The notes under the pieces are model-generated. The model was not told where the DNA came from. It did no database searches and saw nothing but the letters and a program-made list of their open reading frames with translations. Below, in pieces: positions 1,976 through 3,327 of a stretch of DNA of 64,000 nucleotides. The stretch lies in the sequence record NC_048016.1; one strand, written 5' to 3'. The stretch's first letter is position 1. Each line of letters starts with the position of its first letter. Both the position numbers and the translations under genes were made by a program.

Positions 1976-2051
1976 GCAGGCATAGCTCAGTTGGTAGAGC
2001 ATCTGATTTCCAATCAGAGGGTCGTCAGTTCGAACCTGACTGTCTGCTCCA
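1976..2051 (+). tRNA. tRNA-Gly(TCC)
   Basis: Acceptor GCAGGCA/TGTCTGC, anticodon arm TCTGA-TTTCCAA-TCAGA, T-loop TTCGAAC, U73, encoded CCA. Confidence 0.96.
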
Positions 2052-2150
2052 GAAATGTAATTACAGGTTTACACTGTATTATGTACAAGACATGTGCGCT
2101 TAGCTAAACTGTTGCAAAAATAACAGGTTATCTCAGTACATATGTGCAAT

Positions 2151-2233
2151 GGTTGTGTCACGTTGGCGTGAGTTGGGTTTACGGCAGGCAAACGGACGTA
2201 AGCTCTTCGTGGTTCAATTCCACAGCACAGCCC
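2151..2233 (+). ncRNA. tRNA-like RNA without a canonical anticodon arm
   Basis: Acceptor GGTTGTG/CACAGCC, D-like TCACG-TTGG-CGTGA, T-arm GTGG-TTCAATT-CCAC. A 9-bp stem with a 13-nt loop replaces the anticodon arm. No CCA. Confidence 0.6.
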
Positions 2234-2255
2234 TCTTGTTATGTAAAAGAATTCT

Positions 2256-2340
2256 GGCGGGTTACTCAAGCGGCAACGAGAGCAGACTGTAAATCTGTTG
2301 ACTTCGGTCTTCGGTGGTTCGAGTCCACCACACGCCACCA
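2256..2340 (+). tRNA. tRNA-Tyr(GTA)
   Basis: Anticodon arm GCAGA-CTGTAAA-TCTGT, long variable arm, TTCGAGT, CCA. G5-A68 mismatch in the acceptor. Confidence 0.94.
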
Positions 2341-2345
2341 GTTAT

Positions 2346-2420
2346 ACACCCATCGTCTAGCGGTTAGGACCGCTGCCTTTCGAGCAGTTAACCGGGGTTC
2401 AAATCCCCGTGGGTGTACCA
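2346..2420 (+). tRNA. tRNA-Glu(TTC) copy 1
   Basis: Acceptor ACACCCA/TGGGTGT, anticodon arm GCTGC-CTTTCGA-GCAGT, CCA. Confidence 0.93.
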
Positions 2421-2423
2421 AAC

Positions 2424-2499
2424 ATTCCCGTCATCTAGTTGGTAAGGATACGACACTTTCACTGTCGGTACACGAGTTCGAGTCTCGTCGGGAATACCA
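2424..2499 (+). tRNA. tRNA-Glu(TTC) copy 2
   Basis: Acceptor ATTCCCG/CGGGAAT, anticodon arm CGACA-CTTTCAC-TGTCG, CCA. Confidence 0.94.
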
Positions 2500-2509
2500 A
2501 ACACAAGAC

Positions 2510-2601
2510 CGTAACCCTGCGGTGTGGTTAGTCGCCACTACTAGCGGTTACGCGATGCCCACTGCTGCGGGGTGTGTGATAGTGAGGTGGTTGACCCCAC
2601 C
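2510..2601 (+). ncRNA. Structured inter-tRNA element with two T-arm-like hairpins
   Basis: CGTAACC/GGTTACG helix enclosing GTGG-TTAGTCG-CCAC, plus GGTGG-TTGACC-CCACC. Confidence 0.4.
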
Positions 2602-2622
2602 AAGCGAGCAGCGAGCAATTTT

Positions 2623-2698
2623 AGGGAAGTAGTTCAATTGGTAGAGCGTCGGTCTCCAAAACCGGTTGTTGGAGGTTCGAGTCCTCTCTTCCCTGCCA
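2623..2698 (+). tRNA. tRNA-Trp(CCA)
   Basis: Acceptor AGGGAAG/CTTCCCT, anticodon arm TCGGT-CTCCAAA-ACCGG, G73, CCA. Confidence 0.96.
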
Positions 2699-2704
2699 AA
2701 CAGT

Positions 2705-2781
2705 AGGACTGTAGCTCAGACGGTTAGAGTGCCGCCCTGTCACGGCGGAGGTCGCGGGTTCGAAACCCGTCAGTCCTGCCA
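2705..2781 (+). tRNA. tRNA-Asp(GTC)
   Basis: Acceptor AGGACTG/CAGTCCT, anticodon arm CCGCC-CTGTCAC-GGCGG, CCA. Confidence 0.96.
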
Positions 2782-2786
2782 TATCT

Positions 2787-2876
2787 GGAGAATTGGATGA
2801 GTGGCTTAAGTCGCTCCCCTGCTAAGGGAGTGTATCCGAAAGGGTACCGTTGGTTCGAATCCAACATTCTCCGCCA
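2787..2876 (+). tRNA. tRNA-Ser(GCT)
   Basis: Acceptor GGAGAAT/ATTCTCC, anticodon arm CTCCC-CTGCTAA-GGGAG, long variable arm, CCA. Confidence 0.96.
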
Positions 2877-2882
2877 TTACAA

Positions 2883-3038
2883 TGACACCCGCACCTCAAA
2901 ACCCTGGGTATTGCACCCAGAAAAAGAGTGCTGGCAGCCAATAAAGGCATCCGTTAGTAACCGTAGCCTTCGGGCGTAGATGGTGAAGACCGCCAAGTGC
3001 AGCCTTTAGAACTCCGTGGGATTCGGAGGGGTGTCACC
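2883..3038 (+). ncRNA. ~155-nt tRNA-framed structured RNA
   Basis: Terminal stem TGACACCC/GGGTGTCA stacked on CTCCG-TGGGATT-CGGAG. Internal helices CTGGGT/ACCCAG, TAAAGGC/GCCTTTA and GCC-TTCG-GGC. Confidence 0.65.
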
Positions 3039-3064
3039 TACACACGTTAAAAGGATCATCCTCC

Positions 3065-3160
3065 TTGGGCGAAACCAATGGGCGCGCGGGGTGTATAGTC
3101 TGGGGCAAAGCAATCCCAGATGAGTCGTCTGACGTTAACTCGTCAGGGGGCAAGCGGCCA
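3065..3160 (+). ncRNA. Second structured domain between tRNA-Ser and the pseudo-tRNA
   Basis: Hairpins TTGG-GCGAAA-CCAA, TCTGGG/CCCAGA and CTGACG-TTAACT-CGTCAG; ends in GGCCA. Confidence 0.4.
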
Positions 3161-3169
3161 CACAATTTC

Positions 3170-3245
3170 TCAACGGTAAGCAAAACTGTGATGCACTGTG
3201 CTCGCGAACAGATTAGGTGGGTTAGAATCCCATAACCGTTGACCC
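3170..3245 (+). pseudogene. Degenerate tRNA or tRNA-like element, identity unassignable
   Basis: TCAACGGT/ACCGTTGA acceptor, T-arm GTGGG-TTAGAAT-CCCAT, CTGT/ACAG stem with 8-nt loop GCTCGCGA. D-loop lacks GG; ends in CCC. Confidence 0.6.
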
Positions 3246-3251
3246 TTTTAT

Positions 3252-3327
3252 TGGTGATTAGTTCAGTCGGTAGAACAGTGGACTGTTAATCCATATGTCG
3301 CAGGTTCGATTCCTGCATCACCAGCCA
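3252..3327 (+). tRNA. tRNA-Asn(GTT)
   Basis: Acceptor TGGTGAT/ATCACCA, anticodon arm GTGGA-CTGTTAA-TCCAT, CCA. Confidence 0.96.

Follow-up and report, generated by a model that had tools for sequence, protein, structure and literature searches.

A conserved tRNA-shaped RNA gene without an anticodon loop in the tRNA clusters of jumbo phages

Species 1 RNA of phage T4 (rnaC) is a stable RNA of 139 nt that is encoded last but one in the T4 tRNA cluster. It carries a canonical T-arm (CCGGG-UUCGAAU-CCCGG) and an acceptor-like stem with two U.U mismatches, and its gene does not encode a full CCA. The function of the T4 species 1 and species 2 RNAs is still described as unknown (PMC3014915; PMC9697503). 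Mimicry of tRNA is also found in mascRNA and in the t-elements of plant mitochondria, which recruit RNase P and 3' processing in this way, and the stack of acceptor stem and T-stem-loop together with the elbow, rather than the anticodon, is what RNase P, RNase Z and the CCA-adding enzyme gauge (PMC4810234). Some jumbo phages encode Ro/TROVE proteins with a tRNA-like partner (PMC7824862).

The window analysed here is a stretch of 64 kb corresponding to bases 1-64000 of Erwinia phage Wellington (MH426724, 244,950 bp), a jumbo phage that encodes its own RNA-polymerase subunits. On the plus strand of the window, positions 1976-3327 hold eight tRNA genes (eight tRNAs by ARAGORN) with ORF-free spacers between them. 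A tRNA-shaped element of about 155 nt lies among them at 2884-3038 on the plus strand, 7 nt downstream of the CCA of tRNA-Ser(GCU) and 213 nt upstream of tRNA-Asn. The 7-nt spacer (2877-2883) includes the conserved leader ACAAT, which places a U at position -1; CAAT or CAAC stands directly 5' of G+1 in nearly all homologs, and TTAT is found in AH06. No GenBank annotation covers the element in Wellington or Kwan, and its gene goes unannotated in all GenBank records examined. ARAGORN made no call on the element, and Rfam, including the tRNA model RF00005, gave no match to it even at E ≤ 10. Of the eight genuine tRNAs in the cluster, at least six have an encoded CCA; the element, by contrast, encodes CC followed by T.

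Other tRNA-like or conserved sequences were seen in this cluster and in related ones. A degenerate tRNA-like sequence at 3172-3245, with the ends CAACGGT...ACCGTTG, the T-arm GTGGG-TTAGAAT-CCCAT and then ACC-C, scores 20 bits with the Rfam tRNA model, which is below threshold, and received no ARAGORN call; pEa_SNUABM_29 shows 93% conservation over a 71-nt stretch that contains it. The ORF-free spacers at 3040-3170, 2500-2622 and 2052-2255 show 79-97% identity to an IMG/VR contig (L017) and to pEa_SNUABM_11, in which an RNA of the 3040 type lies between tRNA-Met and tRNA-Asn. These conserved spacers are likely to be further structured RNAs. In addition, genes of 97-120 nt are annotated as "tRNA-Ile(aat)" in Stratton (L004:2051-2170), Asesino (L005:1388-1508) and Huxley (L010:2119-2215). 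The Stratton gene has canonical D- and T-arms, carries an insertion of 45-60 nt in its anticodon region and ends in U-CC-C rather than CCA, and the Asesino gene is 97% identical to it. This is a second kind of oversized tRNA-like gene, and the first 6 kb of the Wellington window yielded no homolog of it.

The element is closed by a 7-bp acceptor stem, in which GACACCC (2884-2890) pairs with GGGUGUC (3029-3035), all parts being given on the plus strand. The T-arm (3012-3028), with the stem CUCCG/CGGAG (3012-3016/3024-3028) and the 7-nt loop UGGGAUU (3017-3023), adjoins the 3' strand of the acceptor stem without a gap. The acceptor stem is followed by the discriminator A3036 and by C3037 and C3038; the final A of CCA is not encoded, and the next base is T. 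All homologs end in N-CC followed by C or T, with C in most relatives. The P2 arm (2891-2931) follows the acceptor stem without a linker in the position of a D-arm, and consists of a base helix (2891-2894/2928-2931), an extension (2896-2897/2926-2927) and a distal hairpin (2904-2909/2915-2920). A single U at 2932, invariant as T49 in alignment A2, links P2 to P3. In P3, box 1 (GGCAGCC, 2933-2939) pairs with box 2 (GCAGCC, 2999-3004) around a central mismatch. A variable long arm (2940-2998) extends from P3, with the short helix P4 formed between GGC (2946-2948) and GCC (2992-2994) and with short terminal loops. The 7-nt segment UUUAGAA (3005-3011) corresponds to the variable loop, and its final residues, A127 and A128, are invariant in alignment A2.

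The minimum free energy (MFE) fold of the 155-mer has an energy of -60.3 kcal/mol (z = -3.55) and is matched by none of 200 shuffles. A preliminary description of the locus had identified the GACACCC/GGGTGTC stem, the flush CTCCG-TGGGATT-CGGAG hairpin and the A-CC end; we find all three in place, and the MFE fold keeps both helices. The same description had a multi-branch insert of about 120 nt replacing the D and anticodon arms. An interior of this size is present, but to call it a replacement is imprecise, since P2 and P3 occupy both positions; it is better seen as two enlarged, non-canonical arms than as an insert lacking structure.

By itself, the frame of acceptor stem and T-arm carries little weight. 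In dinucleotide shuffles, a 7-bp stem that abuts a T-type hairpin of 5 bp and 7 nt occurs about 3.6 times per 128 kb, and the same frame with CC at positions 74-75 occurs 0.1 times per window in such shuffles. In the real window, every frame with this CC is either the element or one of seven tRNAs out of the eight. It is the conservation of the element, with covariation, in 17 homologs that raises it above chance.

By BLAST and by pattern scans, the element was detected in Kwan (identical), pEa_SNUABM_11, phiEaH2/Stratton, Asesino, Moabite/Yaphecito, pEa_SNUABM_43/42, pSal-SNUABM-04, SNUABM_6/10, Huxley/Machina/Parshik, SNUABM_29, SPAsTU and AH06, as well as in IMG/VR and metagenome contigs. 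The homologs span at least six genera of jumbo phages (Wellington-, Erskine-, Machina-, Seoul-, Agrican- and Moabitevirus), and BLAST detected a diverged copy in all listed Agricanvirus records, that is, in 16 besides AH06, including Ea35-70 and RAY. A covariance model built from the element family (R1) found exactly one copy in the whole Wellington genome, at 151 bits. With this model, Asesino, SNUABM_43, SNUABM_29, AH06 and SPAsTU gave one copy each, Moabite and 2050HW gave two each, and OBP, Survivor, KpLz-2_45 and vB_Ec-M-J gave none. When bacterial genomes were scanned with the T-arm string, the hits were cobalamin riboswitches and unrelated sequences, and none belonged to the family. A looser T-arm pattern run on IMG/VR gave chance-level matches alone beyond the known group, among the matches listed. 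A full-text literature search found no prior description of this RNA family.

The second copies in Moabite (L006:1609-1733) and 2050HW (L228:1210-1333) are paralogs located about 500 nt downstream of the first. They share the ACAAT leader, the P2 base GCAC/GUGC and the A-CC-C tail with the first copy and differ from it in the acceptor stem, the T-stem (CCAGG/CCUGG) and the arm. This second copy is found, conserved, in nine records of Serratia phages and in one of a Pectobacterium phage. Both Moabite copies are overlain by CDSs annotated as hypothetical proteins, CPT_Moabite_078 (L006:988-1110) and CPT_Moabite_080 (L006:1562-1765), and these CDS calls are probably spurious.

For the covariation test, 17 sequences were aligned to the covariance model, and the alignment is thus biased toward the structure; counts based on MAFFT agree with those reported here. 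Standard pairs occupy 95.8% of the cells, compared with 84.4% in shuffles and 39-51% when the partners are slid by 1-3 columns. Both sides have changed at 13 of the 21 pairs, a number that none of 500 shuffles reached, and the covariation score is 0.363 versus 0.158. RNAalifold, run independently on 14 distinct sequences, recovered the 7-bp acceptor stem, the 4-bp P2 helix, P3 and the 5-bp T-stem.

In the acceptor stem, pairing is kept in the homologs and five of the seven pairs show changes on both sides, the variants being GACACCC/GGGUGUC, GACACUG/CGGUGUC, GGUACCU/GGGUACC (Machinavirus) and GACGCCC/GGGCGUC (RAY). All four pairs of the P2 base covary (GCAC/GUGC, UCCC/GGGA, GUCC/GGAC, GUUA/UAAC and GUCA/UGAC). 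The T-stem is paired in 100% of the cases and shows changes on both sides at three of its five pairs, with CUCCG/CGGAG, CUACG/CGUAG (AH06), CCACG/CGUGG (RAY) and CCAGG/CCUGG (second Moabite copy). The 3-bp P4 helix covaries between GGC/GCC and AGC/GCU. P3 was predicted in nearly all isolated-arm folds (dot-brackets read by eye), and its variation is mostly compatible with wobble pairing. Its centre is never a Watson-Crick pair, with A.A in Wellington and C.A, C.C or AA.A (SPAsTU) in relatives. Since P3 is nearly invariant, it is supported mainly by folding energy and wobble changes and is less well proven than the other helices. Because the G.U pairs of the stems would be A.C on the opposite strand, the plus strand is the RNA strand, as it is for the tRNAs.

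These data bear out two expectations of the preliminary description, namely that the terminal stem is conserved and that a tRNA-framed, non-decoding RNA gene lies in the phage tRNA cluster. The well-supported topology is a cloverleaf, in which P2 takes the D-arm position and the P3 arm takes the anticodon-arm position around a four-way junction. The arm in the anticodon-arm position ranges from 41 to 142 nt across homologs, and its folds contain no conserved 7-nt loop of the anticodon type; the terminal loops are mostly 3-5 nt (read by eye).

A decaying pseudo-tRNA without function could be suspected in a cluster that holds degenerate tRNA-like sequences, for example at window positions 3172-3241. 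However, compensatory substitutions maintain four helices across genera with little likeness in stem sequence, and the element is single-copy and conserved in position in dozens of genomes, which makes such decay very improbable. A protein-coding origin was rejected, since length differences between homologs are not multiples of three and the substitutions in the stems are compensatory.

In almost every genome, the element starts 3-7 nt (typically about 6 nt) downstream of a tRNA, after the leader ACAAT or ACAAC. It lies between tRNA-Glu and tRNA-His in phiEaH2/Stratton and between tRNA-Glu and tRNA-Asp in SPAsTU, and in RAY it follows the sole annotated tRNA of that locus. AH06 keeps the element between two small protein genes, in a 2.4-kb locus without any tRNA. 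This AH06 arrangement would suit a punctuation element, that is, a signal like the t-elements or mascRNA for cleavage by RNase P and at the 3' side, with the excised RNA as a by-product, and the conserved features are indeed those read by processing enzymes. In most genomes, phiEaH2/Stratton and SPAsTU among them, genuine tRNAs within 3-7 nt already supply cleavage sites, however, and a bare signal needs neither a conserved P3 sequence, nor a conserved variable loop, nor arms of 60-140 nt. We consider the punctuation model improbable.

Comparison of the arms among homologs reveals a mosaic. Wellington and phiEaH2 are 94% identical in the central arm and 49% in the 5' module (the distal part of P2), whereas Wellington and Moabite are 84% identical in the 5' module and 14% in the centre. 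An IMG/VR contig (L023) combines the 5' module of phiEaH2 (98%) with the centre of Asesino (100%). Such mixed identities indicate that exchange of the P2 tip is independent of that of the long arm, and that the conserved boxes are the junctions. The variable long arm exists in at least five unrelated versions of 28-140 nt across the family, while the core, consisting of P3, the variable loop, the T-arm and N-CC, is nearly constant across genera. The discriminator base is A, with U in Moabite and G in one further sequence (L019).

Contigs from relatives in four RNA-library runs cover the element patchily and at low depth, do not establish its transcription, and break around 2937-2970; strain variation at a cassette boundary is a more likely cause of these breaks than RNA ends. 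Contigs from plant and seed metagenome or metatranscriptome runs break at 2937-2970, near the junction of box 1 and the centre, and breaks inside the element are consistent with cassette variants that co-exist in natural populations.

The P2 distal hairpin has the form GCCGC...GCAGC or GCAGC...GCAGC in phiEaH2 (L003:1470-1613), Asesino (L005:676-818), SNUABM_29 (L009:1127-1243) and SPAsTU (L218:1424-1542). These tips are GC-rich helices like P3, with a central C.A or A.A mismatch, so that the motif occurs twice per RNA. The repeated mismatch motif may be a protein-binding site.

The exchange of arms brings in the main rival explanation, in which the tRNA frame serves for RNase P excision and stability and the P2 tip, the long arm or both are the cargo, acting as a base-pairing sRNA, an aptamer or a decoy of a variable host factor. 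Between genera the arms are traded as cassettes, and even close relatives differ in them, a pattern typical of specificity determinants in an arms race, and the type A and type B centres are each conserved inside their own group. On the other hand, no arm sequence is found family-wide while P3, the variable loop and the T-arm hardly vary across six genera; the arms can shrink to hairpins of 28-30 nt, the shortest of the family (Moabite, SNUABM_29), and the complement of the conserved boxes is absent from the RNA island. Taken together, we regard the cargo model as possible but not probable. An intermolecular target of the boxes was rejected, as GGCUGCC is absent from the plus strand of the RNA island and occurs in the window about as often as expected by chance.

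The T-loop deserves separate consideration. In the 17 aligned sequences it reads U-G-N-R-A-U-U, in which U, G, A, U and U are invariant and positions 3 and 4 are free; RAY, which lies outside this alignment, has UGAAAGU. Compared with the tRNA pattern U54-U55-C56-R57-A58, the position of U55 is held by an invariant G, and that of C56 by G, A or C. No covarying partner for loop positions 3 and 4 was found among the 17 sequences, so that the alignment offers no support for a tRNA-like D/T elbow of the G19-C56 type. We also rejected an interdigitated double T-loop with the purine-rich P2 strand, since the Wellington-type fold places G43 and A44 in Watson-Crick pairs and no covarying partner of the T-loop was found.

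The same 17-nt hairpin, CUCCG-UGRRAUU-CGGAG, is found letter for letter in the cobalamin riboswitch aptamer, whose consensus combines a 5-bp stem with the loop UGNNANU, compared with UGNRAUU in the element. In crystal structures, the loop of this riboswitch hairpin is probably a T-loop. The exact T hairpin, AACUCCGUGRRAUUCGGAG, is seen again in aptamers of cobalamin riboswitches at L217:3266-3457 and at about 40 other bacterial or metagenome loci (L147-L217), many from Desulfobacterota, and one locus was verified with Rfam. The motif alone is common to the two RNAs; the rest of the riboswitch is absent from the element, and the Rfam Cobalamin model does not match it. Since the hairpin recurs in riboswitches, it is a generic structural module and not a degenerate tRNA loop.

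Several known identities were tried and rejected. As in a tRNA, the 7-bp acceptor stem is coaxial with a 5-bp T-stem and is followed by a discriminator and CC, but the element lacks an anticodon loop, has a non-canonical T-loop and is missed by ARAGORN and RF00005. A Y RNA bound by Ro is not supported, as there is no TROVE gene and no YrlA match on any family member; the search of the phage genome for the TROVE family gave no match while its positive controls were detected. Searches of the phage for the CCA-adding enzyme, RtcB and SmpB families were all negative, so that with these four families no recognisable phage-encoded partner of the RNA came to light. The segment GCAGCCAA..GGCA, which we take to resemble part of 4.5S RNA, raised the question of an SRP RNA; there is no GNAR hairpin, no partner strand and no Rfam match. 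Likewise, GCAGCCUUUAGAA presumably resembles a type I-F repeat, and a CRISPR I-F repeat mimic was rejected because the required repeat hairpin is missing.

The element is a real, mostly single-copy RNA gene, whose strand, fold, family and mosaic evolution are established by these comparisons. On balance, we favour the explanation that it is a stable, tRNA-shaped RNA of about 155 nt without an anticodon, which would be released by RNase P and would serve as a mimic, decoy or adaptor built on the tRNA core; we infer its processing, stability and mimic role. It would be co-transcribed with the phage tRNAs. No sigma-70-like promoter or terminator was found inside the RNA island, although this counts for little in a phage with polymerases of its own.

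Host RNase P would then cut at G+1. The determinants of this enzyme are all present, namely U at -1, G at +1, the 12-bp stack of acceptor and T-stems, the T-loop and R73-C74-C75, and the element is predicted to be cleaved at G+1. In RNase P substrates, R73-C74-C75 pairs with the P15 loop of RNase P RNA. The 3' end would subsequently be trimmed to CC, and the host CCA-adding enzyme would probably complete CCA.

Once processed, the RNA would offer its core, as a mimic, decoy or adaptor, to a factor that recognises the acceptor, T-arm and elbow half of tRNA. Since the core is kept and modular exchange affects the P2 tip and the long arm, the action appears to run through the core. A substrate mimic for tRNA-processing, charging or CCA-attacking enzymes would fit the pattern of conservation; a scaffold for processing or stability also fits a conserved frame with a variable interior. 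Aminoacylation seems unlikely because the acceptor sequence and the discriminator are not conserved and G3:U70 is absent. The element cannot decode, and a decoy for anticodon nucleases is unlikely because there is no loop of the anticodon type.

An anticodon-less tRNA-like frame would also suit a miniature tmRNA, in which the tRNA-like domain would be joined to a tag frame (GCA GCC AAU AAA GGC AUC CGU UAG UAA) for ribosome rescue or reprogramming. Copies of the Wellington and phiEaH2 types do have a short frame that starts with Ala and runs to a conserved UAA. The frame, however, is not conserved: Moabite has four codons of it, Asesino and L019 have 24-25, and that of SNUABM_29 reads on into the T-arm. 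At pair 3:70, 13 sequences have C-G and four have U-A, and G3:U70 is absent. Moreover, ARAGORN calls no tmRNA, Rfam gives no tmRNA match at E ≤ 10, and the phage has no SmpB gene. We find the tmRNA reading scarcely credible.

Returning to the core mimic that we favour, a broader version of it would place the element in a widespread and so far unrecognised decoy class of jumbo phages, analogous to T4 rnaC, whose core soaks up or redirects a host factor at the tRNA acceptor end or elbow and whose arms tune specificity. This version seems rather unlikely to us as it stands. One candidate target of such a decoy would be, for example, a defence toxin acting on tRNA 3' ends by modification or cleavage.

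The element thus founds a new and well-supported family within a known kind of RNA that is still unexplained, the stable RNAs of phage tRNA clusters that are built on a tRNA frame. It is a second, independent family with the logic of T4 species 1 and 2, which have lacked a function for about fifty years, and it offers a cloverleaf fold, processing determinants, dozens of natural variants and mosaic arms. Because the hosts Erwinia, Salmonella and Serratia are tractable, the role of a non-decoding phage tRNA becomes directly testable. The annotation can also be corrected, as the gene is unannotated in GenBank and the Moabite copies are hidden under CDS calls.

The element and T4 species 1 RNA share a place in a phage tRNA cluster, an acceptor-like stem that stacks on a T-arm, and two internal hairpins. 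It differs from rnaC in its UGNRAUU loop, its perfect and covarying acceptor stem and its conserved P3 boxes. R1 run with filters off gave at most 2.4 bits on rnaC and rnaD, the rnaC signal coming from the T-arm alone, and BLAST of the element found no match in T4-like phages. The parallel with the T4 species 1 and 2 RNAs that had been drawn in the preliminary description accordingly holds for the build of species 1 and not for homology, and it does not extend to species 2 (rnaD), in which no T-arm frame is seen in the sequence or in the MFE fold. The T4 rnaC is an analogue of the element rather than a homolog, the likeness being one of architecture only.

Other tRNA mimics share single features with the element. 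The tRNA-like domain of tmRNA also combines an acceptor stem and a T-arm without an anticodon arm and is read by tRNA-processing enzymes, while the element lacks G3:U70, a conserved tag frame and evident pseudoknots. YrlA is likewise a non-coding RNA with a tRNA-mimicking module. It ends in a Ro-binding stem and not in an acceptor stem, whereas the element ends in an acceptor stem and Wellington has no TROVE gene. Finally, mascRNA and the t-elements are cis signals of a larger transcript, whereas the element is mostly flanked by real tRNAs and carries large, conserved extra arms.
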